A stretch of 64,000 nucleotides of DNA from Macrostomum lignano (GCA_002269645.1 NIVC01000076.1:85975-149974), one strand, 5' to 3'; counted from the stretch's first letter, positions 4,101 through 33,461 are shown. The notes: generated by a model not told the origin, from the letters alone. Numbers and translations: made by a program.

Positions 4101-7100
4101 AGCTGACAGACACAGCAACAGCAGACATACACTGCAACAGCAGACAGACACTGCAACAGCTGACCGACACTGCAACAGCTGACAGACACAGCAACAGCAG
4201 ACGTACACTGCAACGGCAGACGTACACTGCAACAGCAGACAGACACTGCAACAGCTGACAGACACTGCAACAGCAGACAGACACTGCAACAGCAGACAGT
4301 CAGACACTGCAGACAGACAGACACTGCAACAGCAGACAGACACTGCAACAGCTGACAGACACTGCAACAGCAGACAGACAGACACTGCAACAGCAGACAG
4401 TCAGACACTGCAGACAGACAGACACTGCAACAGCTGACAGACACTGCAACAGCAGACAGTCAGAAACTGCAGACAGACAGACACTGCAACAGCAGACAGT
4501 CAGACACTGCAGACAGACAGACACTGCAACAGCAGACAGACACTGCAACAGCAGACACTGCAGACAAACTCTGCAACAGCACACAGACACAGCAACTGCA
4601 GACACTGCAGACAGACAGACACTGCAATAGCAGACAGACACTACAACAGCAGACAGACACTGCAATAGCAGACAGACACTGCAACAGCTGACAGACACTG
4701 CAACAGCAGACAGTCAGACACTGCAGACAGACAGACACTGCAACAGCAGACAGTCAGACACTGCAGACAGACAGACACTGCAACAGCTGACAGACACTGC
4801 AACAGCAGACAGTCAGACACTGCAGACAGACAGACACTGCAACAGCAGACAGACACTGCAGACAGACAGACACTGCAACTGCAGACACTGCAGACAGACA
4901 GACACTGCAACAGCAGACAGACACTGCAATAGCCGACAGACACTACAACAGCAGACAGACACTGCAATAGCAGACAGACACTACAACAGCAGACAGACAC
5001 TGCAATAGCAGACAGACACTACAACAGCAGACAGACACTGCAATAGCAGACAGACACTACAACAGCAGACAGAGACTGAAACAGCAGACACTGCAACAGC
5101 AGACACTGCAGACAGACACTGCAACAGCAGACAGACACTGCAAAAGCAGACAGACTGCAACAGCAGACACTGCAGAAAGAAAGATACTACAGACAGTCAG
5201 ATAGACACTTAAAACAAAGAGACAGGCGGTCAGACAAGATAGGTTCAGTTGGACAGCTAGATATGTACAAAAAAGACAGGTTCAGACAAGACAGACCTTC
5301 TATGGTAGTCCACACAGTCCACACATAGAAGACAGCAGGTCCAGACAACAGAAAATGCAACTTCAGACAGACAGGTAAGGAAATACCAACAACCAGGTCC
5401 AGACATGAAAGACAAACAGACCCAGACATAAAAGACAGGCAGGTCCAGACGACAGCAAAGACAACTTCAGACAGACAGATAACCAGATCACAAAAGCCAG
5501 CTTGTTTGAATACTGTCGAAACGCAGTTTTAGAAAGTCTGTAAATGCTGTCATCCTAGTTAGCACCAAAACGAACACTCTAACCTCCCAATCCAGGACTG
5601 TCCAAAATGCGGAGTTTGCATCGAAAAGAACGGCGGCTGCAATCATATGCAGTGCTTCAAGTGCAGATTCGATTTCTGCTGGGTTTGCCTCGGCGACTGG
5701 CGTCAGCACGGCAAAGATTTCTACGAGTGCAGCAAGTACAAAGAGAATCCGTCGATGCTTAGCGAGGCCGCCGCAGGCGCCCAGGCTCGCGAGGCGTTGC
5801 GCAAATATCTGCACTATTTCACCCGCTGGGACAATCACGGCAAGTCGCTGCGATTGGAGGCCGACGCTTTGAAAAAGATTCGCGACCGAATTGAAGAGCG
5901 CGTCATGCTGAGCGAGGGCACCTGGATTGATTGGCAGTACCTGATTGTGGCGGCTGAGATGCTGCGCCGGTGCCGCTACACCCTGCAGTACACCTACCCG
6001 TACGCCTATTTTCTGCCTAAGGGTCACGTGCGCAAGGAACTGTTTGAGTATCAGCAGGTGAGTTTAAGTTAAAATAAAGTTTTCTGTACTGTCCATTGAA
6101 AACGATACCGTGACAAGAATAGCTGAAGAATCGTTGCAAACAATTGTCTAGTGACTCTAGCGACTCTGGATTCTGGAACGACTCAAAACGCGTCAAATGC
6201 GACAGAGAGGCTGAATCGTAGAGTCGCAGAATCGTAAAAGAGTCACGGTAGATTCGTCCAAGAATCTCTGTGTTGGCGCTTAACTTTCACCGGGGATGTG
6301 ACTCTAATTTCATCAAGCAACGCAAATGCGCCTCAAGCACAACTTTGTGACTAGAGTGGTTTCAGAGTCGCAGACAATAAAACGCTTTAAAGTGACTCTT
6401 AGGTGACTCTTTGACGACTTTATGGCGACCTGTACCGTGACATCTCGTAGTTTTAGAGTCTTCTAGAGTCACTTCTTTTCTATTTTACCTGAGTTTCCTG
6501 AGTTACCTGCAACGACTGAAACGACTTTGGGCCGAGGCAAGGGACCTTTTTGGCCTAGGTACCATGGAAGTCATGTTGCCAATGACTTTTCAACTTTACT
6601 TGTTGCCATTCTGAAGTTGGACCCAGGATGCCAAATTAAAATTGGAGTAATCTGTAAATATGGAGTCTGCAGAATTCTTTGACTAGCTGGCATCCTGGTT
6701 TTCAATTTGGCACTACAATTGCGATGCCCAGTGGTTAGAGCGTCGGACTCACGACTGAAAAGTCGGGGGTTCGATTCTCGGTCCACTCGGAACAATTTGG
6801 GTCCTTGAGCAAGGCACTTAACTCTGCATTGCTTCAGTTCACCCAGCTGTAAAATGGGTGCCAGCATTAGTTGGGGTAATTGAGGGTGTGTGGCAACCCC
6901 CAGTCCTTGGACTGAACAGCCGTACGCAGCCTTCAGATGCGCCGCGCAATAGCTGTGGCTGAGCTGTCGGTTGCACATCTGCCCATTATAGGTGTAAGTG
7001 TAATCAGTTATTATTATTATTATATGTGATGCTTAAAAAACCCTGGCTTATCAATTTTACACTTGATAGCAACACGATTGAAGAGAATAAAGTTTAATAT

Positions 7101-11042: not shown

Positions 11043-11811
11043 TACTAAACAGAGTGAATACGAGTATCTAATAACACGGTAGTGTTTCTTAATCAATTAA
11101 TCGTACCGGGTTTCCTTTTCCTATGTAATTTTTTCATTTTATTACATGTAAATCGATAAAATGTATCAACTATTTATGTTAGCAGCTTAGCTGCCATAAC
11201 AATTTATTGCCCCACATATAGATATAGTAAGGTTGTAAGGTTGACTGAAGAATCATACAGTTCTAGATAAAGTTTCTGGAAAGGAAACTGACTGTAGCTT
11301 CCATATTTTCACGCTTTAAAAGATAGGGAGGCCAAAAAGCCAGGTGTCCCACCTCTATATAGTGTTATTGAAATAGTTTCTGCGAGCCTAGTTAGTAAAT
11401 TATAGCTTACTGTGTCAGTTCCAATTCCATGTAGTCTAGATAGCTAATTTTAAAACACACTGGCTGCATACTTGCCCTTGAAAACGATTTTATAAGAAAA
11501 ATCGATCTAAGCTTTTGAATTCAACACTGCCATTTTAGACAGGAAATTCTAACAAATTTCAGTTTATTTTTTACGAGCTTGCAGGCCAATTCGAGAAGAA
11601 AAAAGTGGTTGGGAATGCTACGTGGACCGGAACTGACGTGGACTGTGCTCAGTCAGACTTGGTCATCCTTTTCTGTCAGCTTCTCATTGGCGGACGCGCG
11701 GAGCTCGGGCTTCTTGTTGAGATCTACTTAAATGCCAACCCCTATTGAAATCCTTGCCTTGCTACTTTTATTGTCGGTTTTCTCACGTACGCAGAGTAAC
11801 AATACGGTTCA

Positions 11812-12413
11812 ATGGTGAGTTTCATTATTCTGTTTCGAAATACATTCATTTTTCTAATATGAGTACACAAGATTTACCTATTCGATTTATTTATACGCAG
11901 GCAACTCTCAGGACCAGGAGCGTCGCTGCCGTCGCTGCGATCTGCTGCATTCTCTACCTGGCCTCCGTGATCACCGCTGCGTCCAATGAAGGCGACTCGC
12001 AATCGGCCCAGAAGGCCAAACGGCCCAAGTACAATGAAACTCGATTCAAGGAGGTTATCATCAGGGGCAATGTAGAATGGAATCGCACCAGAAAGGACGA
12101 CGACATGCGGCCGTCCTATGCTATGCTGCACGCCCACCTGCAGTGCGGCTCCAACCTGACTAACATTAAAGAATTTGTCAAGTCGATCCTGCAGGAAGAA
12201 TACTGGCCAAACGTCTACTGGAAGAACGGGCAGGACGCCAAGCCAACGCTTTACATATTCACCCAGGAGAAGAAGTACGCGCACCGGATTGATGTGCTGG
12301 ACAAGTCTTCCGACGAGATCAAGGATCTGCTGAGAGGCTACGGATTCAACGGCACTCCCGATCCGCCGGAAGAAGAGGCAGAGGAGGACAAGAATACGAA
12401 GACCGAGCTTTGA
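11812..12413 (+). CDS. Sep15/SelM-family-like ER protein without Sec; exons 11812-11814 (ATG only) and 11901-12413 (~171 aa)
   Basis: ATG|GTGAGT donor and TTATACGCAG acceptor in frame. Signal peptide MATLRTRSVAAVAAICCILYLASVITA. Segment LTNIKEFV...WPNVYWK...AKPTLYIF...RIDV...SDEIKDLLRGYGF follows the recalled SelM/Sep15 pattern. C-terminal KTEL resembles an ER-retention signal. Confidence 0.7.
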
Positions 12414-13752
12414 TTTTGATTCTATTAACTGCGTTGAACACATTACTCGTAGTAACTTACTTTGTGCTTTTACATGTAACAAAAAAACCAAACTTAATTT
12501 TAACTAAATAGGATAAGTACATGTAACTTAATTATTGGGGCGAGAAAATCGGTAATTAATACTACGTACTTTCAATTTATATTGTAAATGAATCAGCCAT
12601 TTCTGTTGGTTTTGGAAACTGATTAAAATGACCGACTACATTTTCTGTTTTGAATCTCGGTTGCACGCGTATTTATTGTACGACCTTCTTGATAAACAAA
12701 ATGCTTGCATTGGTTAATGCCCACTTGAGGCGAGGACTGTTTGTGAATTGTCAGCTGAATATTTTGTTAAAGATACACTTTGCTGAAGTGCAGTGCTAAA
12801 GGTCTTCGAGAGATTCTGTGACTCAATTTCTTACAGGTGTACGTGCGTACTTTTGAAACTTCTCTTCTAATGCGTGCACACAATCTTTTAATTATTTGTC
12901 AACATCTGCCAGCAAGTGTATAGCGAAATATGTTAAATAGCTTCCGAAAAGTTTAATTTGTTTGATTTAATTTCACGCATACAGGCCTTCTTGTTCAGGT
13001 GCAGGTACAGCACATTTTGTATGTGTACGAGTACATGTAGTCAAATTTTTATGTACTGCATATCGGGGAATAAATGTAATTGACACACTATAGCTAGCTA
13101 GATTTTAACAACAATGAGAAATCCAGATACAGTTGGATAAGTTTTGAGCAAAAGTCTATAGTAATATTAGTCATCTCTTCAGATTGATAATTCCCAAATA
13201 AATGGTTACATGTGTGTGTGCATGTCCATGCACGTCATGCTCGACAGCGGCTAAGATTATTCAAAACAAATGCTTCTGTGCAATCGCAGTTTAATGTAGC
13301 TATGCATAAAAATAAAGCCACACAAGGCTGCGTAAGTTACCCAAGCGAAATCGAATACAAGTGTGGCTTAAAATGCATGTTGCGTTTGATGAAATGAAAA
13401 AGATTATCTGCAATATAATAGCTCTTAAATTGTTTGCACATTAACGGTTTTTTTTTAAATTAAAACAAAAGAAAATATTATTTGTTTCACAATACTTTCT
13501 GATTGTATTTCAAAAGTTCAAAATTAAGTTATATTTTTTTATTTTTAGTCCGTTGTTTCAGCCGAAATTTAAGTTGTACATAAGTGGGGCGATTTTTTGG
13601 TCACTCATATTTTCTTTTTTCTTTCTTGTTGCGTGATGCGGACTTTTGCGCGCATGCCCATGCAGTGAGAAGTCGTGTCGTTGTTCGGTTAGTCGTGAAT
13701 GATGAAGACAATAAAATTTTGTTCTTTTTGATGTAGTGTTTTTGTATTGTAA

Positions 13753-15034
13753 TAGGCACTTCAGTGAGAAAATTAAATTTCAGAAATTGTTATAGGCTGC
13801 TATTTCACTAGATAGATCTTACTTTCCCATTTCCAAAATGGCCAAACTTTAGTGATTTGGTTGAGTAATAAGGAAACTACAGCTATTTTAGTAACCCCGA
13901 TTTGTGCCTTTAGCCAATGGAATTTTTACATTACGGTTTGTGATCATTTTTGGCCAAAAAGTTGGCTTTTTGTCTTTGAACACTTGTAATTAATTTTCTA
14001 GCCAACCAAAATGACTGTGCTTGGTGTCATTTTGTTCAGTTTTTTAGTGTTAATTGTATGAATTATATATTTTAATATTATTTTATATGCCCAAGTTGCT
14101 AAGCTAATTGAAACAGGATGGGTGTATGAAATTTTGACTATTTTAACCAGATACGCAATGATTGCAATTTTAAAAATACAATAGCATCTGTTCTGCTTGC
14201 TTAATTTATACAAGGCTAGTGTCATTTTGTTCAGGTTTTTACCTACTATAATACTATTCTACTTCTTGCCCTAAATTTTTAATGCATGACAGACACCCCA
14301 ACTGCAATGTAATGTGCTGTACAGGCTTTGCGCATGGGTTTATTAAAAAACGGTTTTGCCTATCGTGTTCAGCATAGCAGAATTAGTTAAATGACACAGA
14401 GAACTAGTTTGCCGGAAGGCAGAGTCTCACAAAAAACACGAAATACACGTTTCAATGGGTATTTTACATGTAAACGTATCAAAAAAAGAAACCTCCACAA
14501 AATTTTTGCGCCTATAGCTATTGGCAAGCGGTTTTTTTTACTGTGCTTGTATTGTCAATAGGTAATGAAAAATATAAAGAGAAACAATGCAGGAAAAGGA
14601 TTTCATGGAAAATTTTGGATTTGAAATTTTGCATAGAGCCATATGGGCATTAAAAGAAAAAAAAAATTTTTTTAACACCAGAAAAATGTTTCTAAATTAT
14701 CCCTTTACACTATAAAACCTTTGTTTCCATTATAAGAAACACATTGCAGCTAAGAAAAAGCATTTTCTGAACCACTGTTTTTTTATTCATTTTGGCTTCA
14801 ATTTTATATTCCTCCTAAAAAATGGTCAACTTTAAAAATAGACAGTGCAAAAAGTATAACAAAGCTAGACTTGCAGTTGGTGTCATTTGAAAGAGCTCCT
14901 TTTTACCTTTTAAATGCATATTTTACTTTCATCCTAGCTTCTATAGTTTCTTTAAAATCGCCCTTGAAAAATTGGACTTTTTTCTTACTTTTTTGCCATT
15001 GGCACGCACTTCTTATAACTCACTGAAGTCCCTA
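13753..15034. mobile_element. Putative non-autonomous DNA transposon (~1.28 kb) with 16-bp TIRs and 7-bp flanking duplication
   Basis: Left end TAGGCACTTCAGTGAG versus right-end reverse complement TAGGGACTTCAGTGAG (15/16); ATTGTAA at 13746-13752 and 15035-15041; AT-rich non-coding interior. Confidence 0.6.
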
Positions 15035-15288
15035 ATTGTAATATCATACTCGTATAATCAGAAATTTGTGAATTTTGGGTAGGCCTATATGATTTATATT
15101 TATTAAATAAAACTTTACAATTTTATCAAATCATAAATTTTGTCACCTGTAACCATACTTCATAGCCAGGTCCCGTGATTTTTATGGGGTATTTAGGGTA
15201 TTTTAAATTTAAGCTCCATTTCTCTGTAACTTTGACTAAAATCCATATAATCAATAATCCATGTAGAATTTATTGTGGCAGAAGCTTT

Positions 15289-15695
15289 GGCAATCTTTTA
15301 CTTTACTGCATTTAATTAATTTAACCGTTTTTTTATTTCAGAACATAAAGATGGTAGGAGGATAAAAGGTGAGTGTCTTTAAGTGTTAGGTAAGTCAATT
15401 AGTCAGTAGTAATGAGCCACCCAGTACAGGAAGTTGCTAAACTCCTTTCTAGGAAAGAGCCAGCACCAGAGATACTCATTGAGATGGGTTTCAAACAGAG
15501 CTTCAGAAGTGCCATGCATTGCCCAGAACTTTGCCTTGACATGGGCCCACAACCCCTCGATGGTGTTTGTGTAGATCTATGGGTCATTAGGGTAGACAAA
15601 ATTGAGTCAATAATTCACAACAGCGTGGTTCTGCAAGCCATTGTAGGCCTGCCATCTGCCAAAATTAATTAAAGGCAGTAAAGTAAAAGATTGCC
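15289..15695 (-). mobile_element. Internally deleted Merlin (IS1016/IS1595-like) DNA transposon with a decayed transposase C-terminus
   Basis: ~35-bp TIRs starting GGCAATCTTTTACTTTACTGC; degenerate 8-bp TSD GAAGCTTT/AAAGTTTT (6/8). Minus strand ~15657-15403 reads WQAYNGLQNHAVVNY*LNFVYPNDP*IYTNTIEGLWAHVKAKF...HLNEYLW, matching the recalled Merlin/ISXO2 motifs (W.AY..L, H..VNH..NFV.P, HTN.IE..W...K, YL.EY.W). Confidence 0.8.
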
Positions 15696-16020
15696 AAAGT
15701 TTTTCATTTTAAATTGTATTGTAATTGTATTAAGATACAAAATACTAGCTAGGGCCTAGGCACAGCAATGGCACTAGGCTTAGGTATACATTAATATATA
15801 TCTATATGTAATCTTGACTAAAATACATATAAAATATATCAAAAATATAGGCCTACCTATACTATACCTAGTGCTAGGCTTAGGCCTAGTGCTACAGTCC
15901 CATAGTATAGGGGCCTACTTAGGCCATAGTTTGGAAAGCAACAGAACATGTATCAGCAATCTTCCAGTTTGTTTTGCGATATTATTCTCAAGTTTGAATT
16001 GGTGCTGCAACACAATGACA

Positions 16021-16709
16021 CATGCTTGAGTGCAACCTTGGGATTCACTCGCATACATGCGTAACCCCCCTGTTTTACACTGGCCATGTGACTTACTGGG
16101 TTTTTTTCATCCAAAATCTAGTTGCCAAATGGCAATGTTTTTGCAACAATTTTCATGCATTGATGAAAAAAATAATATGCTCAAATCAGCTTAGGCTTCT
16201 GGTTTTCAGCCAAGTCAATCTTAGCAGTAATAAAATGTGACAGACTGTTTTATCATTGGCAACTGCCTTGGTTCAAGTTGGTTGCCAGATTGGCCTCTGA
16301 TGCCACAAATCCAGTTGCCAATGGCTTTTTTGGGTTGCTGGTGGCTATCGTATGGCCTAAAAAAACCCAGGTGACTTACCTATGAAAGAAACCCTAGAGC
16401 AACATTACCTAAAAACTTTTGGGTAAATAGCAGGAGTAACTATGACTGTCTTATAAGGGCTAAATGCCTCATCATCTAATTAGTACTATGTCTGTATTCT
16501 TTGGGATGGGCATTTTTTGTGACTTACCCCTGGTCCACCACAATTTATAGTGGCCAGATTGGCCAGGTCGGCCAGCAGTTGTGTATGCATATTCACTTGG
16601 CCATTTCTATTGGACAGAATAGTAGTCACATGACTACTCTCAGCCAATAGCGACTTACATGTGTTGCTAATAGAAACAGCCAGGTGATTCCCAAGGTTGT
16701 GCATGCATG
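16021..16709. mobile_element. CAT...ATG MITE (170-bp palindromic type) interrupted by a nested related element at 16052-16591
   Basis: Outer termini CATGCTTGAGTGCAACC...GGTTGTGCATGCATG with TSD CAATGACA/TAATGATA (6/8). Inner element CATACATGCGTAAC...GTTGTGTATGCATA with TSD TTCACTCG/TTCACTTG (7/8). Confidence 0.72.
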
Positions 16710-17402
16710 TAATGATATGTTAGAAAATGATGTCTATGGCCAAAAGGGATGCAAAATAGCACTATTAAAGACATTCTGATTTCACTGGCTATCTGAGGAA
16801 TTTCTATGGCACTGCCTATACCCTGGCATAGCATTTGGTGCTGTGCTATATTGAGTGTCATATTATTATCCTCTGTAACCAGATCCTCTATAGTTTTCTG
16901 CTCTGTTTTTTGCCCCCCTTTAACTATTACTTGTCTGCTTCTATTTCAGATCCCTTTTGGCCATAGGTATCATTTTCTGATGTTTCACTACATTGACACA
17001 CCATTTTAAACTAAATAAACAAGCAAATAATATTGTGAAACAAACTGGAAGATTGCCCATATATCATATATGCTAGTTGCCAGGATTTCTTGGTATACTA
17101 TAAAAATGAAAGTATTAAAAATTTTTTATACTTTGTTTTTCATTGCAAAGGAATTGCAATGATTTTTAATAAATTCGGGAAAAGGTCTCTACATATGCCA
17201 AGTATACCAAAAAATTGGAAATATGATAGTCATATATGCCAAAATTAAAAAATTATGCAACTTTACTTTGTGCTTCAACAATAAAAGACATATTGTGCAG
17301 TTGCAAACAAAACAGTATGCAGTAAAATTTGTTAATATAGTATTAAAATGTATTATATGAATGCTGCAAAATGCACCTTGATGTTATCTCTATAACAACA
17401 TA

Positions 17403-17701
17403 CATACATGCGCAACAGTCGGCCGAGTCGGCCGATCCGGCCGACCGATTTGGCGGCCAACCAAGGAAGTCGCAAAAATGCCCACCCAAAAAAATGACCA
17501 AGTAGTAGTACTAAGTAGCTGACGAGGCATTTTAGCCTAATAAGACAGTCATCGTTACTCCTGCCGTTTACCCAAAGTTGCGTTAACTTTGCTTTAGGGT
17601 TTTTTTTACATGTAAGTCGCATTTTTGGCCAAAAACTACGTCGCATTCTTGTTAAAACTAAGTCGCATGGCCGACCGAATTTCGGAGGTTGCGCATGTAT
17701 G
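17403..17701. mobile_element. MITE with TIR CATACATGCGCAAC and perfect 8-bp TSD
   Basis: Perfect 14-bp TIR; ACAACATA at 17395-17402 and 17702-17709. Confidence 0.9.
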
Positions 17702-17776
17702 ACAACATATGACTCATGTTTGTAGGTAGAACTTTTGCAATACAATAAGCAGAAATATATGAAAAAGCAACTAAAA

Positions 17777-18756
17777 TAATAATAATAATAATAATAATAG
17801 TTACGCCCTATGCTAGCCACGGGAGTGGCCAAGAGGGGGGAGCGTCAAATCGCGCGTTTCAGAGCTAGGTCTCTAATGTGCTTCACACTGGCCATCTGGC
17901 TGGGTGCTCGCACATCTTCAAAAAGGCGGTCGACATAGTGGGCTGATCGTCCCTGGCCACACCTGCATGGTCCCTGCGGGGTCCACAGCAGGATGTCCTG
18001 CAGTGGCTCTGGGCAGCAGGCTTTAGCCCGGATGACATGTCTGGCAAGCCGCAGGCGCCGCTGACTCAGCAGGGCAGAAGGCCGCATCAGGCCTGTGTGC
18101 TTGTACAGGGACTCAGTTGTCTCGCTGCCAGGGCTGCGGCGGGCGCCGAAAGCGGCGCAGACTAGGGCTGCATGTGATGCGTTGAGCTGTGCCTCAAGCG
18201 CCCTGGTCAGCGTCCAGGTCTCAGCATTGTACAGCAGGGTGGTCTCAACAACCGCCTGGAACAGCTGGGACCTGGTGCCGTCAGACAGGGCCTCGGAGAG
18301 CAGCACCACCCGCACAGATCGGAAGGCAGCCCAGGCCTTGCCGCGCCATCTCATTAGGTCGTCACCGACATCTGGCACCAGTCCGCCAAGGTAGACAAAT
18401 GAAGGCACTTCAGGAGCGCCGTCCCGGGGCCATCGCCGTCTCAAAGTCGAATCTTGGCGGGTAGATCATGCGGCACCATCAGCACCTTGGTCTTCCTGGC
18501 GTTGATGACGAGACCGACCCTCGCCGCCACCACAGTCAGGCTGTCCAGCAGCCGTTGGGCGCCTTTGGCCATGGAAGACAGCAGGGCGAGGTCATCTGCG
18601 TAGCCAAGAACAGACAGTTTCTTCTCCGGGTGCCGTCTACTGGTGCGCCTTTGCAGCAGAAAGCCATCCTCTGATGTCGGCAGGCCGGTCCTGAGCACCC
18701 AGTCCATCACCAGCACAAAGAGAAAGGGCGCCAGAGTGTCACCCTGTAGCACTCCT
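17777..18756 (-). mobile_element. 5'-truncated, frameshifted non-LTR retrotransposon (RTE-like) RT C-terminus with (TAT)n tail
   Basis: GVLQGDTLAPFLF...LGYADDLALL in one frame; FVYLGG...TLLYNAETWTLT in a second frame (shift near 18442); short 3' UTR and trinucleotide tail at 17777-17799. Confidence 0.88.
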
Positions 18757-20213
18757 GTAGCACAAAATTATAGAAATGGCTACTAAAGGCAATCATTGAT
18801 ATAAAATGCATGTCCTGTAGGCCTTTCTCAGAAGCAAGTGATAAGTAATAACTTAGTAGATAAGTTAAGTTTAAAGTATTTTAGCAATCAAAATTTTTTT
18901 ATGGATAAAAAAATAACCCTTAATCTCTATGGCAGTAGCAATTATACGAGCTAGCTACTGAAAAAATATTTTTTGATACATATAAGCAAGAATATTGTGT
19001 CTGGTTGCAACAACAATCTCTACTAGCATATAAAAGCCAAGTGTATAGAGGTGGCAAGCCCCCCCCCCCTACTAGCCTTTCAAAAGCCAGGAGTATGGAG
19101 GGTGGCAAGCCAACAGCAAAGTTGAGGGGAGGTAGAGGTATGAGTTAAGGAATTATAACTAAATATGGCTTCTTAGTTCTTATTTAGGCTAAATATATAG
19201 GTCTTAGTTATAAATCCATCGTCCTACCTTGAAGATAATAGCATTTTTATTCATTAGTTACAAGTAATTTAATCAATATTAAATGCCTAGCAGCAATATA
19301 TAATTTAAACTTGCAATAGAGAAATATTTAATTGTTCTTTTTTTAAAACTGAATCCTTTAAAAGCAAAATTAAGAATGCGAGTGCTATCATTTTTTGTTA
19401 TGTGACATGTTTTGCTTTGCATCAGGCATCGTTAGGCTCCTGATATTTAGTTACAATTTATTTGTTTATTTACTTTTATTTAGCAATTAGATGATAGCAT
19501 TATAATTTAGCAATTATAAGTAAATAAACAAATATTGTAACTAAATTTTAAGACCCTTTTCATCAGATGCGCAACTTTACCATAGTAATCCTTTAAAGTC
19601 CTTTAAAGGTTAATTCAATTAACATATTGTTTTTTCTAGGTCAATGTAGTTTGCGCTAGTAATCAAGTTGCAATTTCATTTTTCTTTTTCTTTTCTTTTG
19701 TTTTTCTTTTCTTTCATTTCTTTTATTTTTCTTGTCTTGTTGTTTTTGTTGTTTTTGAATTTTTAATTTCTTGGGTAGAACTTGGCTAGTAGCCTCTTTA
19801 TATAGCTAGATTGGCTAAGTCATTCTTCTATCATATATCTATGCATAAGGACATCAATTTTTTCATTTGGTATATTTCAAGTCTTTTCTAAAATGCTATC
19901 TTCTTAAAAGATTTCTAGTTTTGTTTCATATGCATATAGCTATATAAGAACATAAAGTAGACTGAAAATTTAGTGAATAAAATAGAATGTATTTGAATGT
20001 GCACAATAATTTTTTTAAGATATTAGGATTGAAACTGAATGATTAGGAGAGAAGAAGCTGAATTGTAAGATTAAAACATTTAGAAAATCAAATTTGTAAA
20101 AGCATATGATGACTACCAATTGTTTTTTGCTATATATAAAAACTTAACTATAATTTGTATTTATAATTTTGCAAAATAATACAACATAGTTAATATGTTT
20201 TTTATGTTTTGTC

Positions 20214-20358
20214 CATGCTTGGGCGCAACCTAGGGATTCACCTGGCCATTTCTTTTGGCAACACACACATGTAAGTTGCTATTGGATAGAATAGTAGTCA
20301 CTAATGTGTGTGTTGCCAATAGAAAGAGCTGAGTGATTCCCAAGGTTGCGCGTATATG
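20214..20358. mobile_element. Palindromic CAT...ATG MITE copy with an internal deletion
   Basis: CATGCTTGGGCGCAACC...GGTTGCGCGTATATG; TSD GTTTTGTC/GTTTTGCC (7/8). Confidence 0.8.
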
Positions 20359-22133
20359 GTTTTGCCTGCATTATTGGTATCTGGAAAATACTATTGTAAT
20401 AATGTATTTTAAAGCCCCAGGAATTTGCTAGCTAAACTTTTGTAGATCTTTTTTATACCAAACTTTTTTGAATGAATTGATGCTAATTGTTTTTATAATG
20501 ATAGTTGCCTTACTAAACACACAGAAAAAAAATTAAAATATGTAGAATAGCCTACTTAAGGAATAGTTGATAAATAAAGATTATTATCAATATGAATGAG
20601 ATTGATAGTTCAAATCACATTTAAACTCATATAGCATGCTGGTATCGCCTCTAAATAGTGATTGTTGAAATAATAGCTCATATTGGTAAGTAGGGATTTC
20701 CAAATCCTACCACTTTTCAATCATCAGATTAGGAAATCCCAAAATCCCAGGATTATACTCGTAAATCAAAGTAATTCCCAGCCCAAAGTAATTTTAGTCC
20801 TCCTAGACAGACCTTGATAAAGATTTAATTAGTTTTCAAATGTAATCATAGGCTGTGATGATAGTTTTAGCCTTCAATTTTTTGTTGAAAAGAAAGCATC
20901 TTACTCTTATTCACATTGTAGGAACTAGATCTACTAGATCTAGTTCTATGGTCACAACCATATCACAGACCATGCCTCGCCTCATGATTAGCTGACATTG
21001 TGGGTTAGTATTGGTGGGTCAACTGTCTGTCGGTAGTAAAATATGAAATTTGGAATTGCATGAATTGCTGTCATTTAAAAAGTTGCTATTGTAAATCCCA
21101 GAATTTACAGTTGTCGAAAATCCCAAATTTTAAGAATACATTCCAGACTATACTGGTGAATCACAAGAAATTGCATCCGTAGTAACACTTTTGATGCTTT
21201 AAAAAATCATTCCCCAGAATAAAGTAGTATTTGCTCAAGTGTAGCTGCAGCAAAAAATTAACGGGATTAATTTGGTTAGATTGTTCGCCTGACTGCCCCT
21301 TTTAAATTGTATTTTTAGTTCTAACTTTAATCCCTCGGCTTGCTGCTCCCAATCCCATCAGAACAGTGAGGCATTCCCTGAAAGATAGAAGTTTCAGGCA
21401 GGGGAAGGAAAAGATCGGATTGAGCAGGGGGGCAGTGCAGTGAAGGAGGAAAGAGTGTAGCCGAATGGGAAAAAGATCTGTGCGCAGCGGGGCATTGGCT
21501 CTTTCAGTCAGTTAGTCAGGCAGGCAGTCTGTGTGCTTTGATGAAAAAAAACTGATGGGCCATTCGCTTCCCTAAAGGCATCCTGCAGGAGGGAAGCCAG
21601 AGAGCTAGTGAGGGAAGGGGGGCAGGTCCCGGCCGATTTGAGGAGAATTTGAGAAGGAATGAAAACGTGCTCAATAGCGCTCGTCCAATAGGAGAGCTGA
21701 CTTCTTCAATATATCCAAACATCAAAGCGTTATTTCGCCTATATTGCAGTTCTGTCCCATAGTCCATAGTTTCTCTCTGTCTGTGTCTACACTGTCTATA
21801 TATGCCGATATTTTCAGACCCCATCCCCAATCTTTGGCTAATCGTTACATTCAACCCAGCTTCCCACAAGTTTTATATTGCTATAAAGTATATGTATTAA
21901 TATAACGTTTACTCTAAAAGATTGAAACTCCGCTGCTTTCTTGATTCAATATTTATTTTCGCTTTTTCAGGCTCTCACGGTGCGAAATAGTTAACAATAA
22001 TAACCATATTAACAGTGAGAGAGAAAGAGAGAGAGAGAGAGAGAAAGAGAGAAAGGCGATTCGACAAGGGCGAAAGTCGGCTTCGACTCGATAGAGAGAG
22101 AGAAAGAGCAAAGGATTGTGAGGCTGACGCAGC

Positions 22134-25100
22134 ATGCCAGCTCTAGTGGATATCAATGTCACAATGGCCCTGACGCCAGTGTCACACTCGCCAATGGACG
22201 CCGAACAATGGGGCCGTCAGAGATTCGCTATATTTTTAGCCGCTTCAATTGGTTTGTACGCCGGTTTAGGATGCCTATTATTAGCCTGTATAGGTATCGT
22301 TTGGCGCCGTCGGAGGCGCTTAAATCGGCGCCGATTACGCGCCGGCGCCTCGTCGGCGGCTGTGTCCTCGTCGTCGGCCGCTATGGGCAACGGTGGTCAC
22401 AATTTTGGCACCAATCACGACTGGCTGCTGGCGAGAGGCACCGGCTGCAGCTCTTCGTCAGCTGGCGGGACTCCGTCGATGGATGACTGCAGCGTTCGGT
22501 TGGTCAGGCAGCTGCCTTGTTCGGGAAAAGCCGCCATCATCTACGAGGCTGTGCTAGATGTGAGACTCCATAATCCCCTATTTAGATTCTATAATCCCTT
22601 ATTTAGATTATCTAATCCTCATTTTGGATTCTTTAATCCTCATTTTAGATTCTCTAACCCCCATTTTGAATTTTCTGATTCCCATTTTAGATTCTCTAAT
22701 CGCCATATTGGATTTCCTGATCCCCATTTTAGATTCTTTGATCCCCATTTTAAATTCTCTAATCGCCATTTTATAGATTGTCTAATCTCCATCTAGCATT
22801 CTTTAATCCTCATTTTAAATTCTCTAATCCCCATTGTAGATTCTCTGATCCCCATTTTAGATTCTCTGATCCCCATTTTAGATTCTCTAATCGCCATTTT
22901 GGATTTTCTGATCCCCATTTTAGACTCTCTAATCGCCATTTTAGATTCTCTGATCCCCATTTTAGATTCTCTAATCGCCATTTTAGATTCTCTGATCCCC
23001 ATTTTAGATTCTCTGATCCCCATTTTAGATTCTCTAATCGCCATTTTAGATTCTCTGATCCCCATTTTAGATTCTCTGATCCCCATTTTAGATTCTCTAA
23101 TCGCCATTTTAAATCCTCTAATCCAGATTATAGATTTTAAATCTCCATTTAAGATTCTCTAATCCTCATTTTATAGATTCTCTAATCCTCATTTTATAGA
23201 TTCTCTAATCCTCATTTTATAGATTCTCTAATCCTCATTTTATAGATTCTCTAATCCTCATTTTATAGATTCTCTAATCCTCATTTTATAGATTGTCTAA
23301 TCTCCATCTAGCATTCTTTAATCCTCATTTTAGATTCTCTGATCTCCATTTTAGATTCTCTAATCCTCATTGTTGATAGTATAATCCCCATTGTAGATTC
23401 TCTGATCCCCATTTGAGATTTTATAACCCCCTTGTCCACCCTCAATAATCAGTCTCATAAGCTACTGAATTCTGATTCGACCCATTCATACTTTAGTCTC
23501 AGAACGGCGATCCCTTATCACCCTTCCCATCATGCCTCATTCAGTCCTCAGCCGGTGACAGCAGCGGCAGTCGATCGTGTGTTGCCAAACTATTTTATCC
23601 GGAATCGTCGAGCTCTATAGCCCAGTACCGGTCTGAGCTGTCTTCTTATCGCAAGCTGGAACGAGCCAACGCTGTGACATTCTTCCCCAGGCTGTTTGGT
23701 TGCACAATGTACACCGGACAGAGGCCATGTCTGCTGCTGGAACTGGCCACCGGGGGCTGCTTATCCGACCAGTTGGCCGATAGGTGAATTCTTATCTATC
23801 ACTTAGTTCTCGCTGTACTTTTAGATATTGATAAAACCCCAGGAGTATTGTATCTGAAAGCACTTTAACGAGTTTCTTGTGTCATAGTACTCTTGGCGCG
23901 ACATGTTCAAATTTGAAATGGCATAACCGTTTTATTGGCCTTTCAATTATTATCTAGATTTAGATTAGCTAGATCTATATTGTCTATATTTATATAAGCA
24001 TTAGCAAGGGCGTGAGAGATTTGCTATCTTATATACTTAGCTTTTATTCTGTAAAACTGTTACGTACAATTTGCGTATATGCAGCGTAGGTCTACTTATT
24101 GGCTATGAGTTTATAAGCCTGCTAATCATAATTATTAATACGCTCGTATACAGCATTGCTTTGCAGAGATGCCTACCACAGTTCAGTTAATTAGCATTAT
24201 TACCTTCATTCGATTTTATATGCACTACGCACTGACGATTAGTGTTAAACCTAGACAAAGCTGGGTAGAAGAGGTGGGAACGTATTTCATAGTCGTGCAT
24301 CAGTCTTGAAGGGGTACCCAGATTTATGTAGGATACCTAGATTAATAAATACAGATAAACAGCCGTGTACTCAGATTAATACCTAAATAAATACTCAGTC
24401 ATATAGCCATATAAATACTAAATAAGTACCTAGCCGTATACCCAGATAAGTACCCAGTCATATACCCAGATGTCCAAAAAAGTGGCCATCCTTTTTAGGT
24501 GGACAGCAGGGTATTTATTTGGGTACATAATTAACTTTGAGTGACACTAAAAATCCCAATGAATATATCCAGCTGCTTAAGTGAACTCAAGCCCCCATCT
24601 GTTACTCACTTTCAACTGATAAAATTCAACCAATCAAGGTGCTACAGCTGGTCAGATTTCTGCCGTTTAGCCTGCGCCCTCTGCGCCGCCGTGGCCCAGT
24701 TTCACAGCATCGGTCGGGCTCATTGCCGATTAGAGACTGCCAGCTTTGTGCTCAGAGGGCCGCTGGCACCACTGCTAGTGGGCCTGTCCGGCTTCTGGTC
24801 CACCGTTGGTAGTCACCTGCGCTACGCTGCACCAGAGCTGTTAGCAGCTTCCCAGCAGACTCCGCAGCATCATAATCAGAAACGGAATGGCAAATTGCAT
24901 CAGCAGGGTCAGGGCTCGTTCAATCTGGAACAGCTGATGGCGGCTGATTCTTATTCGCTAGGCCTCATACTGTGGGAGGTCGCTACCCGGTAAGTCCAAT
25001 CACAGTGTATTAGTCTTCTACCGGTATGGGATACTTTGATATGGTTATGATGTCATTGATACTTACTGACGTCATCGACCCTCATTAATGCTTGCTCACA

Positions 25101-26228
25101 TCATCAACTCTCACTGATGCTTTCTGGCTTCATCGACCCATATTGATACTTAATGACGTCATCAACCCATATGGATACCTAATGACGTCATCGACCCGCA
25201 TTTATACCTAACTAATGGCGTTATTGACCACCTGATATTTGCTGATGTCATCGACCCGCATTTATACTTAATGACGTCATCGACACAACATTGATGCTTA
25301 ATGACGTCCTTGACCACCTGATATTTGCTGACGTCATCGACCCGCATTTATACTTAATGACGTCATTGACCCTCATTTCTCTGATCGATAATTACTGAGA
25401 CGTTATCAATCAATCGATCCTCGTTCTTGATACCTATAGACCTCGTTTATACGTGTCATTGATGACAGTAATAATCAAGCAGAGCTTATAAGTGACTATT
25501 CAATACAACTTTTCTGAATGATTTCAAAAAATGATTTTATTAATCAAAGTGATGATAAATAAACTTAATATTCCCTCAATCATTTGAAACGAAATCATTG
25601 ACACTTGTAGCTGGCTTATTTACTGACATCATTAACTACATTCATATTTAGCATACATGCGCAACCTAGGGGAATCGGCCGTTTGTTTCCATTGGCAACA
25701 CACACATGTAAGTGCTATTGGCTGAGAGCAGTCACGTGACTACTATTCCGTCCAATAGCGACTTACATGTGTGTTGCCAATAGAAACGGCCGGGTGAATC
25801 CCTAGGTTGCGCCCAAGCATGATATTTAGAATTTAGTTAGGCCATGATTCCAGTTCACACTACCTTAACTCGCATTGCGCAGGTGCTCTGCATTTTACGA
25901 TAAATCGGAATCGCCGCCATCCTATGCCCCCGTATTCTCTGACCGGCTAAAAGTTCGCAGTTCGTCTGCCTCATCGGCCGATTCGTCTGCTCAACGAACT
26001 CTAACAGCTTCTCAGGCTAGAGCAGCTCTGCTCAGGCCCGGCCTAGACTATTTGTCTACTGCTAATCCTCTGTCGGCCTCTCTGACACTGCCGGTGCAGA
26101 ATCATCCGGCGCTGCCATTTATTGCTGAAACTCTGGCCGAGTGTTGGACACCAGCTAGCGTTGGTAAACGGCTTAGCCCGGCCAGTCTGCACGCCAGGTT
26201 CTCGTCTTTGGCGCCAAATTTTGTTTGA
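22134..26228 (+). CDS. TGF-beta/BMP/activin receptor-like single-pass pseudokinase; exons 22134-22559, 23545-23783, 24639-24989, 25883-26228 (~453 aa)
   Basis: TM helix (FAIFLAASIGLYAGLGCLLLACIGIVW) followed by a basic stop-transfer stretch. Kinase-like motifs: IIYEAVLD, CVAKLF, CLLLELATGGCLSDQL, SWSDFCRLA, AHCRLETASFVL, LRYAAPELL, ADSYSLGLILWEVATRC, LAECW. GT-AG junctions keep the frame (phases 0, 2, 2; total 1362 nt). Confidence 0.82.
22570..23420. repeat. 21-bp-type minisatellite (CATTTTAGATTCTCTGATCCC / CATTTTAGATTCTCTAATCGC) in pseudokinase intron 1
   Basis: Direct reading; it explains the HFRFSDP and MGIRESK ORFs. Confidence 0.92.
25065..25375. repeat. Degenerate minisatellite with TGACGTCATCGACC core in pseudokinase intron 3
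   Basis: Repeated AATGACGTCATCGACCC units. Confidence 0.8.
25652..25821. mobile_element. 170-bp palindromic CAT...ATG MITE with perfect 8-bp TSD (intronic)
   Basis: CATACATGCGCAACC...GGTTGCGCCCAAGCATG; ATATTTAG at 25644-25651 and 25822-25829. Confidence 0.9.
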
Positions 26229-27039
26229 AATTTCTTTTCAATTTACCGGCTAATTAGCTGACGACGCATTAAAGCTTGATTTTTAATGCATTGTTGCTCC
26301 TGCCGCTTATTTACTTTTTAAAATAAACTCAAAAGAATGACTATGCGATTTTTTAGATTAGTTCTATAACTAATATAATACTCATTAGATGTCGAGGCCT
26401 CTCATTATCCTAACAAAATAATAGCTACTCGCGCCGTTTACCCATCGCAAACTTCAACATTAATGGAAATAGAAAATTATTATAACCCCTTCACTGCTTT
26501 GTGCAATTATGCACGAAATGTTACTTATTAAAACCATATCTACACCTGTAAGTCGATACTAGTTTATAATCATAGCCTCAAAACTAATTAGATGACGAGG
26601 CTTTTCATTAATAAGGCTAATGTATAGTTACTCTCGCCCTTTAAACCCTAAATATTCACTTGTATTTTGCCTCTACCCCTTCTCTCCCCTTCTCCTTCCT
26701 AAGAAAAAATAACACTCTCTGAAATTGGAACAGCAGCTTAATCCGATTGGTATTTGCATAGAGAAATATTAAATTTCTTCTTTTTTAACCTGCATCTAGT
26801 CAGTCCTAATCATGAAAGCAGAACGCTGAAGCTATCGGAGCCCGCCCCACGATTGCATGCCAGCTGCTTTTCGATTAACCAATTCGAATTTTATCTAGTC
26901 GCTTCTTATCCTGTTACTTGAGCTTCAACTGGTTCTTCTCTCAGCTGCTTTTTGCACAGCGATGCTGCAATGTTAATTTGGATTTTATCACTGCGCCTTT
27001 TTATTGCTTCACTGCTGTATTGTGTCAGCATGTAAGTCC

Positions 27040-32648: not shown

Positions 32649-33461
32649 ATGCACAAGCTAGTACACCTGCCAATCAATCAATTAAACGAGCACATCACCT
32701 GTCGCCTATGCCAGGGCTACCTGATTGACGCTACTACCATAGTAGAATGCTTGCACGCCTTCTGTCGCTCGTGCCTATTGACCCATCTGACTCAGCAGCA
32801 CGCCTGTCCAGTATGCGATATCCAGCTGCACAAAGGCGATCCATACCGCGCCATCCGCCTAGACCGGGCGCTGCAATCGCTCGTGTACAAACTCGTGCCC
32901 GGCCTATTCAAATCTGAGATGACTCGTCGCCGTCAGTTCTACGTTGAGCATCCTTCGGCTGGGTCTGACCGAGCTTTGAGTCCGGAGAAACGCGGCGATT
33001 TATTAGCGCCAGAGACTGCTAGCCTAGTCCAGGACGACGAACGGGTGTCCTTGTCGCTTGAACTGGCCGACACTAAGCGAATCCGTAATGGCCGACTGCT
33101 CAGAACTGATTGCGTTGATCAGACTCGGGCTTGTTACCTGCTAGCGCCCGCCTGTCTTACTGTGCAACAGTTGCAAAAATTTCTGCGATTGAAACTGGAC
33201 CTACGACCGACTCAGTCTATTGCAATATTCTACACTGAGGACTGTTTGCACGCCGACTTCTCTATTATGGATATTGCCTACGTGTACGCTTGGCGTAGGA
33301 AAGGACCTTTGAGACTGTTTTACACCGTGCTTGAGTCGGCTGCCGCTAGGGCATCTGCTGGAGCTGCTGCTGCGGCTGCTGCTGCTGGCTGTCCCAGCTC
33401 AACTTTTGGGTTGAGCAGCTGTTCCGCTAGCGACAGCGGGGCTGATGCCAATTCCAGCTGA
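32649..33461 (+). CDS. BMI1: Polycomb group RING finger protein, BMI1/PCGF2/4 (Psc)-like, 270 aa, single coding exon
   Basis: RING CRLCQGYLIDATTIVECLHAFCRSC...CPVCD; RLDRALQSLVYKLVPGLFKSEM.RRRQFY; RAWUL domain ending IMDIAYVYAWRRKGPLRLFY.V, all close to recalled BMI1. Exact orthology (BMI1 versus PCGF2) is not resolvable by eye. Confidence 0.9.
   Translation: MHKLVHLPINQLNEHITCRLCQGYLIDATTIVECLHAFCRSCLLTHLTQQHACPVCDIQLHKGDPYRAIRLDRALQSLVYKLVPGLFKSEMTRRRQFYVEHPSAGSDRALSPEKRGDLLAPETASLVQDDERVSLSLELADTKRIRNGRLLRTDCVDQTRACYLLAPACLTVQQLQKFLRLKLDLRPTQSIAIFYTEDCLHADFSIMDIAYVYAWRRKGPLRLFYTVLESAAARASAGAAAAAAAAGCPSSTFGLSSCSASDSGADANSS

Follow-up and report, generated by a model that had tools for sequence, protein, structure and literature searches.

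Signalling by TGF-β and bone morphogenetic protein (BMP) ligands is normally tuned outside the cell, by ligand traps, BAMBI, and co-receptors, or downstream of the receptors, by inhibitory Smads. BAMBI is a membrane-bound, signalling-incompetent relative of the TGF-β-family receptors that is thought to form unproductive complexes. STYK1/NOK, a vertebrate protein of the tyrosine-kinase group that is unrelated to TGF-β receptors and one of several receptor-like kinases that have almost no ectodomain, combines a tiny extracellular stub, an N-terminal transmembrane (TM) anchor without signal peptide, and a cytoplasmic kinase-like domain. Here, we analyse a gene with the same layout at positions 22134-26228 in a 64,000-nucleotide stretch of the genome of the free-living flatworm Macrostomum lignano (GCA_002269645.1, NIVC01000076.1:85975-149974; referred to as the window, from whose first letter all positions are counted). 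Its gene structure, fold, family affinity, loss of catalytic residues, and lack of detectable ectodomain exons are documented below. We hold with moderate confidence that it is a functional, lineage-restricted M. lignano gene derived from a type II receptor of the TGF-β superfamily, which lost the ectodomain, underwent catalytic decay while the C-lobe was kept, and now likely serves as a membrane-tethered scaffold.

The closest described systems are the type II receptors TGFBR2, BMPR2/Wishful thinking (Wit), and ACVR2A/B, which provide the best matches in both sequence and structure. The M. lignano protein shares with them a single-pass TM segment followed by a kinase fold, the lack of a GS domain, the motifs WE..RC, PxYxxP, and CW..RL(T/S), and an N-terminus that resembles the LCNxNVT end of the ectodomain at family-typical spacing to the TM helix. 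It differs in having no signal peptide, no three-finger domain, no HRD Asp, no catalytic Asn, and no DFG Asp, in deletions of 9 and 20 residues, in Gln- and Ser-rich inserts, and in the absence of a C-terminal BMPR2-type tail. The type I receptors (ALK1-7) belong to the same receptor kinase superfamily, share WE..RC, and are matched nearly as well by Foldseek (1e-11), but the M. lignano protein has no GS domain (TTSGSGSG, PF08515) and scores 14.8 bits with a TGFBR1 hidden Markov model (HMM) versus 69.8 bits with a type II HMM. The sequence-only reading, a model's first inspection of this DNA, had taken the juxtamembrane stretch GTGCSSSSAGG for a possible GS-box remnant. This part of the reading is not borne out, as PF08515 gives no match at E<=1, the TGFBR1 score is low, and type I receptors match over 25 residues at E ~0.1; Ser/Ala-rich runs of low complexity occur at several places in the protein, and GTGCSSSSAGG is one of them. 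Compared with BAMBI, which keeps a type-I-like ectodomain without kinase, the arrangement is reversed, namely a dead kinase domain without ectodomain. The two proteins have no sequence relationship beyond the family, and the mirror image is a design analogy.

The gene lies on the plus strand, with an ATG starting at 22134 and a TGA ending at 26228, and comprises an open reading frame (ORF) of 1362 nt or 453 aa in four exons (22134-22559, 23545-23783, 24639-24989, and 25883-26228). Every junction is GT..AG, and the intron phases are 0, 2, and 2. In a search of 5.8 billion proteins, the 453-aa translation was found to be PAA91728.1, the product of Mlig016454g1 of M. lignano, which is named hypothetical protein BOX15_Mlig016454g1 in GenBank and Protein kinase domain-containing protein in UniProt. 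Over 12134-36228, the window agrees base for base with the NIVC01000076.1 contig around PAA91728.1. Two other genomic copies with 98-99.7% identity, Mlig003883g1 and Mlig028532g1 (loci L001 and L003; the present copy on NIVC01000076.1 is L002), also encode 453 aa, and the GenBank Mlig_3_7 record holds one 453-aa model, begun at the same ATG, in all three copies. The Mlig_3_7 annotation is transcript-derived: transcripts were derived from RNA-seq with StringTie, TACO, and TBONE and cut at experimentally mapped spliced-leader (SL) and poly(A) sites, and ORFs were called with TransDecoder (PMC5730564). As this annotation was built from RNA-seq, a gene model in it implies transcription. The identifiers Mlig016454, Mlig003883, and Mlig028532 are not mentioned in the searchable literature or the searched supplements, including expression look-ups; the gene model is already public, and the protein is so far uncharacterised. 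The features of the locus are as follows.

12414-22124, plus strand: upstream intergenic region of 9.7 kb, back to a Sep15/SelM-like gene ending at 12413
22017-22052: (GA)n tract 5′ of the gene
22125-22133, plus strand: 5′ context, with an in-frame TGA at 22125-22127 and an acceptor-like CAG at 22130-22132, 1 nt before the ATG
22134-22559, plus strand: exon 1 (aa 1-142), encoding the exoplasmic tail, TM helix, poly-Arg stretch, linker, and β1-β2
22155-22163, plus strand: NVT sequon in exon 1
22224-22304, plus strand: TM helix (aa 31-57) in exon 1
22305-22340, plus strand: poly-Arg stop-transfer stretch (aa 58-69) in exon 1
22341-22484, plus strand: Ser/Ala/Gly-rich linker (aa 70-117) in exon 1
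22509-22535, plus strand: degraded Gly loop QLPCSGKAA in exon 1
22560-23544, plus strand: intron 1, phase 0, GTGAGA..CAG, mainly a 21-bp tandem array
23545-23783, plus strand: exon 2 (aa 143-222), encoding the 9-residue insert SSAGDSSGS, β3, αC, and the hinge with GGCLSDQL
23581-23598, plus strand: β3 VAKLF with K157 in exon 2
23623-23637, plus strand: αC region QYRSE in exon 2, with R171 in the Glu column
24639-24989, plus strand: exon 3 (aa 222-339), encoding αE, the dead catalytic loop, and the short activation segment; both flanking introns are of phase 2
24721-24744, plus strand: HCRLETAS in exon 3
24781-24789, plus strand: GLS in place of DFG in exon 3
24817-24837, plus strand: LRYAAPE in exon 3
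24844-24921, plus strand: Gln-rich insert of 22 residues within aa 291-316 in exon 3
within exon 3, plus strand: αF with DSYSLGLILWEVATR
25883-26228, plus strand: exon 4 (aa 339-453 and stop), beginning with the RC of WEVATRC and including LLRP, ETLAECW, KRLSPASLHARF, and the TGA
25914-25937, plus strand: PPSYAPVF in exon 4
25950-25994, plus strand: Ser-rich insert in exon 4
26139-26147, plus strand: ECW in exon 4
26322-26327, plus strand: AATAAA poly(A) signal, ~95 nt past the stop, present in all three copies

The kinase domain has lost its catalytic residues. Motif states were assigned from column-by-column counts against 35 receptors aligned by MAFFT, with the HMMER alignment alongside. 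The HRDLxxxN region reads HCRLETAS (250-257), so that the HRD Asp is replaced by R252 in H250-C-R and the catalytic Asn by S257, while DFG reads GLS (270-272) with G270 at the Asp position; both replacements are as first described by the sequence-only reading. The Gly-rich loop, which had been considered gone, is instead degraded: the first Gly corresponds to P128 and one residue is inserted, but the invariant second Gly is kept as G131 and the third position is Ala, as in TGFBR2. For the β3 Lys of the VAIK motif, thought to be kept, the two alignments part ways, as HMMER aligns K157 to the VAVK Lys, whereas MAFFT places L158 there, a one-residue offset beside the 9-residue insert; the β3 Lys is probably retained as K157. 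The αC Glu column holds R171, with E173 two residues on. Compared to the receptors, 9 residues are deleted before HRD and 20 in the activation segment, while a 22-residue Gln-rich insert follows APE and a Ser-rich insert lies near αG. By the sequence definition of a pseudokinase, the absence of at least one of the β3 Lys, HRD Asp, and DFG Asp, the protein qualifies with both the HRD Asp and the DFG Asp missing. The three residues for Mg-ATP positioning and catalysis are all lost, and phosphotransfer is therefore very unlikely. Outside the active site, LRYAAPE, DSYSLGLILWEVATRC, and ECW are present, in agreement with the motifs first reported as kept, and the region noted as Y..PF is there as well, its actual reading being PPSYAPVF.

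Several rankings place this domain among the TGF-β-family receptor kinases, as first proposed, and refine the affinity to type II. Pfam recognises a generic kinase N-lobe only (PK_Tyr_Ser-Thr, E=1.2e-5, above the gathering threshold). Against PDB chains with phmmer, the seven best matches are all type II receptors (TGFBR2 6e-9, ACVR2A 1e-5, ACVR2B 8e-4, BMPR2 1e-3), with TGFBR2 aligning to residues 412-448 in the exon 4 part. The best non-receptor kinases are CaMKs at 0.02 or worse, and type I receptors reach ~0.1 over the 25-residue αF motif alone. We judge this competition the fairest because every major kinase group is represented among the PDB chains. An exhaustive HMMER scan of 1.84 billion representative proteins returned, below 1e-10, the gene's own cluster and one further entry, P0006 (A0A1I8FCK7, Receptor protein serine/threonine kinase), which we rejected as an orthologue since it reads as a frameshifted version of the same M. 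lignano gene. Between 4e-9 and 1e-3, the scan yielded 57 distant matches, and the five best single-domain scores in it (45-50 bits) all belong to BMPR2/Wit-like type II receptors. WE..RC occurs in 35 of the 57 and the CC..CN ectodomain box in 22, with either motif in 37; Pfam assigns Activin_recp to 15/57 and ecTbetaR2 to 1/57. No TGF_beta_GS domain was found in the 20 distant matches scanned singly, which included every one that is type-I-like by motif or length, and the GS-box sequence pattern occurs in 0/57. Ectodomain-less receptor-like ORFs among these matches were unusable for comparison, their source being contigs of 3-6 kb on which genes were called at the ORF level.

Identity to any relative is ~25-30%. 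Nevertheless, the C-lobe signatures WEVATRC, PPSYAPVF, and ECW....KRLSPA are in register with the 35 receptors, in which the family pattern is WE..RC, PxYxxPF, and CWD..ARLTA. Further retained elements are GCLxDxL, SWxxFCxxA, LRYAAPE, DSYSLGLILWEVATRCSAFY, LLRP, ETLAECW, and KRLS; together, the retained elements form the core of the structure and a large part of the surface of the C-lobe. By sequence, the affinity is to the type II receptors (TGFBR2, BMPR2/Wit, ACVR2) and not to type I, and both the unbiased rankings by similarity and the family motifs in register lend good support to a type II origin of the gene.

The predicted fold agrees with this assignment. AlphaFold 2 (AF2), run with the receptor alignment, gives a mean predicted local distance difference test (pLDDT) score of 70.6 and a predicted TM-score (pTM) of 0.65, with the kinase core above 90. 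In the model, a helix at 23-72 (pLDDT 70-97) is followed by a disordered linker (73-116) and, from ~118 to 453, by a kinase fold. Single-sequence AlphaFold reaches a pLDDT of 41.6 and is confident for the TM helix only. In a Foldseek search with the AF2 model, the TGFBR2 kinase domain ranks top (1.8e-13, target-normalised TM-score 0.75), followed by BMPR2 and ACVR2A and then by type I receptors.

On the predicted exoplasmic side, the 453-aa ORF encodes only a short stub. As described before, 30 residues precede a single hydrophobic helix; they are hydrophilic and contain a single N-glycosylation sequon, N8-V-T. The sole hydrophobic segment comprises residues 31-57 (FAIFLAASIGLYAGLGCLLLACIGIVW), with a Kyte-Doolittle hydropathy over 19 residues (KD19) of up to 2.19, and is followed at residues 58-69 by RRRRRLNRRRLR; no second hydrophobic segment was found in the protein. 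The N-terminal flank of the TM helix holds 2 K/R and 3 D/E (net -1), the C-terminal flank 9 K/R and 0 D/E (net +9). By the positive-inside rule, these flanks predict an N-out/C-in topology and no cleaved signal peptide.

Neither a signal peptide nor an Activin_recp or ecTbetaR2 domain was found in the 453-aa protein (Pfam), and the sequence-only reading had noticed no upstream Cys-box exon. In keeping with the latter, motif, Pfam, and custom-HMM searches of limited sensitivity detect none in the 9.7 kb upstream. A regular-expression search finds no CC..CN box in any of the six frames of the window, and a six-frame Cys-density scan yields no convincing Cys-rich plus-strand open segment resembling a three-finger domain. 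In plus-strand open segments of at least 28 aa within 12400-22140, Pfam gives no match at E<=5. A custom HMM of 22 type II ectodomains has no match over 2530 open segments, but it also misses a held-out TGFBR2-like ectodomain. The GC-rich islands upstream are limited to a retroelement fragment and to 21314-21713, a block that has no suitable ORF. The retroelement fragment is degraded and lies at 17353-18444 on the minus strand. The upstream region also includes a 1.28-kb segment (13755-15034) that is found only in the present copy and is absent in L001 and L003, an insertion/deletion polymorphism between homeologues.

The N-terminus itself may bear a trace of the missing domain. MAFFT aligns L4-V-D-I-N-V-T10....P15 to the Cys-box end LCNxNVT....P of 24 receptors, and N8, V9, T10, and P15 are the commonest residues in their columns, while the invariant Cys and Asn are replaced by Val and Asp (LCNxNVT to LVDINVT). 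LVDINVT is separated from the TM helix by 24 residues, compared with 22-41 in the family. The match is short, and a chance origin is estimated at a few percent. This alignment suggests that the protein starts at the former end of the ancestral ectodomain fold and that the last disulfide-forming Cys is dispensable by now, and it likewise suggests a 5′ truncation of the ancestral receptor gene. A possible splice acceptor 1 nt before the ATG had been pointed out, and the CAG is there, together with an in-frame TGA three codons upstream, in all three genomic copies. It may be a relic of an exon boundary in the ancestral gene, or could serve as an SL trans-splice site. Approximately 30% of M. lignano genes are trans-spliced, and the published SL-acceptor motif is [T/C]TNCAG, which the site fits in its CAG only. 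Since the SL ends in ATG, joining at this CAG would place an AUG in another frame, 1 nt ahead of the real ATG. A 122-codon ORF at 22118-22486 (plus strand), which overlaps exon 1 in frame +1 and would be opened by an SL ATG at the CAG, is probably meaningless, though relevant to the question of whether this CAG can act as an SL acceptor.

The reading frame is maintained in all genomic copies. The three near-identical copies would be homeologous or duplicated. Their exons are 98-99.8% identical, introns 2 and 3 are 85-94% identical to those of L001, and all splice sites, the reading frame, and the start context are kept in the three copies. On the three-copy tree, 11 synonymous and 6 nonsynonymous events are placed, and pairwise ratios of nonsynonymous to synonymous rates (dN/dS) between copies range from 0.09 to 0.23. 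Under neutrality, 74% of events are expected to be nonsynonymous, and observing at most 6 of 17 has a binomial p=0.0009. The gene has thus been under recent purifying selection. The signs of an unprocessed pseudogene, disrupted ORF or splice sites and dN/dS ~1, are absent from the three copies. The earlier view of an intact four-exon frame that is no pseudogene stands, given the GenBank model in three copies, the transcript-based annotation, and the nonsynonymous deficit. Beyond this recent interval, an ORF at ~25% identity in which the motifs of fold and family survive and the catalytic ones are lost speaks for a maintained function over decay.

Several observations weigh against the descent of a functional gene from a type II receptor, and they favour different alternatives. 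The protein could be a divergent membrane-anchored pseudokinase of the TKL group that is not receptor-derived, its WE..RC-type motifs being convergent or plesiomorphic. A crude neighbour-joining (NJ) tree (BLOSUM62 distances, 273 columns) sets it basally with the outgroups, on a long branch that lies outside the receptor clade, and 0/200 bootstraps join it to type II. All distances are saturated, the nearest being those to type II (0.81-0.83), with type I at 0.885 and others at 0.83-0.90. Among locally built HMMs, one made from 21 non-receptor matches scores 100.3 bits, ahead of type II, whose 69.8 bits are fragmented, and of type I; the query for type I reference sequences was a TGFBR1 kinase sequence that is 100% identical to database TGFBR1. 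This comparison is biased because the 21 sequences were picked from 1.8e9 proteins by their resemblance to the query. Receptor-specific insertions, deleted in the query, are absent from the set as well. The AF2 and Foldseek results, in turn, lean on an alignment made of type II receptors. Pfam sees the generic N-lobe only, and the top full-sequence match is a fungal dual-kinase protein, which owes this rank to its two kinase domains; by single-domain score the first five are type II receptors, as are the first seven PDB chains. The ordered series of family motifs (GCLxDxL, SWxxxCxxA, LRYxAPE, D.YSLGL.LWE.ATRCS.FY, P.Y..P, RP, E.CW, and RL(S/T)) also stands against a TKL origin, and the succession of TM helix, ~60-residue linker, and kinase, together with the LCNxNVT-like N-terminus, fits a receptor. 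We regard an origin outside the receptors as improbable. It is more improbable still, to the point of being very unlikely, that the protein is an active atypical kinase working on displaced residues such as K157 and E173 in the fashion of WNK kinases. The β3 K157, an E173 near αC, APE, and the αF Asp are indeed kept, but the HRD Asp, catalytic Asn, and DFG Asp are gone without a nearby acidic substitute, 20 residues are missing from the activation segment, and the loop has no first Gly.

The 5′ end bears on a further alternative, a full-length, if kinase-dead, type II receptor whose upstream exons for signal peptide and ligand-binding domain join the CAG at 22130-22132 and were overlooked. This CAG could accept an upstream exon; it is found in three copies, and the gene's own acceptors are equally weak (TTCAG, TCAAG, and GCGCAG). 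The homology of the N-terminus to the end of the ectodomain places an ancestral exon boundary about here, and receptor ectodomains are hard to detect by sequence, as the held-out case above illustrates for the custom HMM. The window, however, lacks a CC..CN box and a three-finger-like Cys-rich plus-strand segment, there is no Pfam or custom-HMM match upstream, and the GC islands are accounted for by a retroelement fragment and a block with no suitable ORF. Moreover, Val-Asp stands where Cys-Asn closes the Cys box of the receptors, a change that would break the ectodomain fold, and the transcript-based Mlig_3_7 models begin at the same ATG in all three copies. On balance, an overlooked ectodomain is unlikely. 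Alternatively, the locus could be transcribed yet without function, as what remains of a partially duplicated receptor gene in decay, with an ORF that survived by chance and through recent duplication. The loss of catalytic residues and ectodomain, the accumulated low-complexity inserts, and the absence of the gene identifiers from the searchable literature would be in line with this. Further, the selection test draws on 17 substitutions, and a search of 15 billion proteins brought up no orthologue from outside M. lignano, so long-term constraint is read from the survival of ORF and motifs alone. A remnant is nevertheless at odds with a 453-codon ORF across four exons with splice sites intact in three copies, with the nonsynonymous deficit (6/17 events versus 74% expected), and with a core that AF2 folds confidently. 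Neutral decay to ~25% identity would have wrecked the frame; instead, the fold-critical motifs and those of the family C-lobe are kept. We consider a functionless remnant improbable as well.

For the preferred reading, a functional derivative of a type II receptor, the following course can be proposed. The ancestor would have been a TGF-β-superfamily type II receptor serine/threonine kinase, from which the exons for the three-finger ligand-binding ectodomain were lost in a first step. The remainder would comprise a 30-residue glycosylatable stub stemming from the last Cys-box residues, the TM helix, and the cytoplasmic part. In a second step, catalysis would have decayed (HRD Asp to Arg, Asn to Ser, DFG Asp to Gly, Gly loop, and shortened activation segment), while the kinase fold and the family C-lobe surface (αE, αF with WEVATRC, PxYxxP, and αH-αI with ECW..RL) would have been kept. 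We infer from the sequence that the protein can neither transfer phosphate nor see ligand. Its most likely role would be that of a membrane-tethered pseudokinase scaffold that binds partners via the C-lobe. The kinase domains of ALK2 and BMPR2 heterodimerise via their C-lobes independently of ligand, and signalling requires this interface (PMC8368100). Because type I kinases pair with type II kinases via C-lobes without ligand, the kinase domains of type I receptors are the obvious candidate partners. By sequestering type I receptors or organising them beforehand, the stub could dampen or bias signalling by BMP/activin; we put this forward at low probability, by analogy to a BAMBI in mirror image. 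Of similarly low probability is the specific case in which a ligand-blind, kinase-dead pseudoreceptor on the cytoplasmic side would tune BMP/activin signalling from inside by taking up the docking surface on the C-lobe of type I receptor kinases. Recruitment of the domain to some unrelated scaffold function is just as possible.

If true, a cytoplasmic-side pseudoreceptor would be a regulatory principle complementary to BAMBI that is undescribed for the TGF-β/BMP pathway, and literature searches for described ectodomain-less or pseudokinase TGF-β receptors returned nothing relevant. In flatworms, BMP/activin signalling is important in axis patterning, regeneration, and the germline. M. lignano is amenable to transgenesis and RNAi, which makes the scaffolding idea testable. 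A type II derivative without ligand-binding domain or catalytic residues that purifying selection maintains would offer a natural experiment on scaffolding or allosteric roles of type II kinases that are separable from ligand binding and phosphorylation, an idea that stems from the work on the ALK2/BMPR2 dimer (PMC8368100). The gene's general significance is limited, given that it has so far turned up in a single species and may have shifted to an unrelated role.

The introns of the gene are rich in repeats, and their tandem-array lengths vary between the three genomic copies. Intron 1, with a GC content of 0.34 versus 0.54-0.58 in the exons, carries at 22571-23431 ~40 copies of the 21-bp unit TAATCCCCATTTTAGATTCTC. 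Intron 3 contains a 29/86-bp array at 25054-25377, the units of which hold the palindrome TGACGTCA, an octamer resembling a cyclic-AMP response element (CRE). Further downstream in intron 3, a 35-nt inverted repeat (25670-25704 and 25768-25802, 80% complementary, 63-nt spacer) resembles a miniature inverted-repeat transposable element (MITE). Fragments resembling this repeat (TWPFLL..DRIVVT) recur in frame translations of 12.4-22.1 kb, which suggests a dispersed family of small elements.

Further genes and repeats flank the locus. At 1158-6072 (plus strand), exons of an Ariadne-type RBR E3 ubiquitin ligase encode RING, IBR, and Ariadne domains; an intron of this gene consists of a long, strongly AT-skewed satellite with spurious minus-strand Cys-rich ORFs at 2956-5000. 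The upstream neighbour at 11745-12413 (plus strand) is an ORF with an N-terminal hydrophobic segment and a C-terminal, ER-retention-like KTEL. It matches the Sep15/SelM redox domain weakly (E=8e-4, below the gathering score) and corresponds to a 171-aa protein in the other copies. The downstream neighbour at 32649-33461 (plus strand) is a Polycomb-group RING finger gene (PCGF/Bmi1-like) with RING and RAWUL domains in a single 270-aa ORF, and its synteny with the kinase-like gene is kept in L001 and L002. On the minus strand, an uninterrupted ORF of 1968 aa at 37232-43138 has a signal-peptide-like start, hundreds of Pro/Thr/Ser-rich repeats (TTGPPSPAETTVDP), and a short Cys-containing C-terminus, and is mucin-like. 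It is followed at 44632-48726 (minus strand) by the apparently intact interior of a Ty3/Gypsy-type long terminal repeat (LTR) retroelement, with a gag-like ORF of 289 aa (weak Retrotrans_gag match) and a 1041-aa pol comprising protease, reverse transcriptase, RNase H, and integrase. An array of ~900 bp at 50384-51287 (plus strand) is built from a 15-bp unit and is open in several frames (GALAP repeats). Finally, 55534-56136 (plus strand) encodes a secreted-looking protein of 200 aa with a WSC carbohydrate-binding domain.

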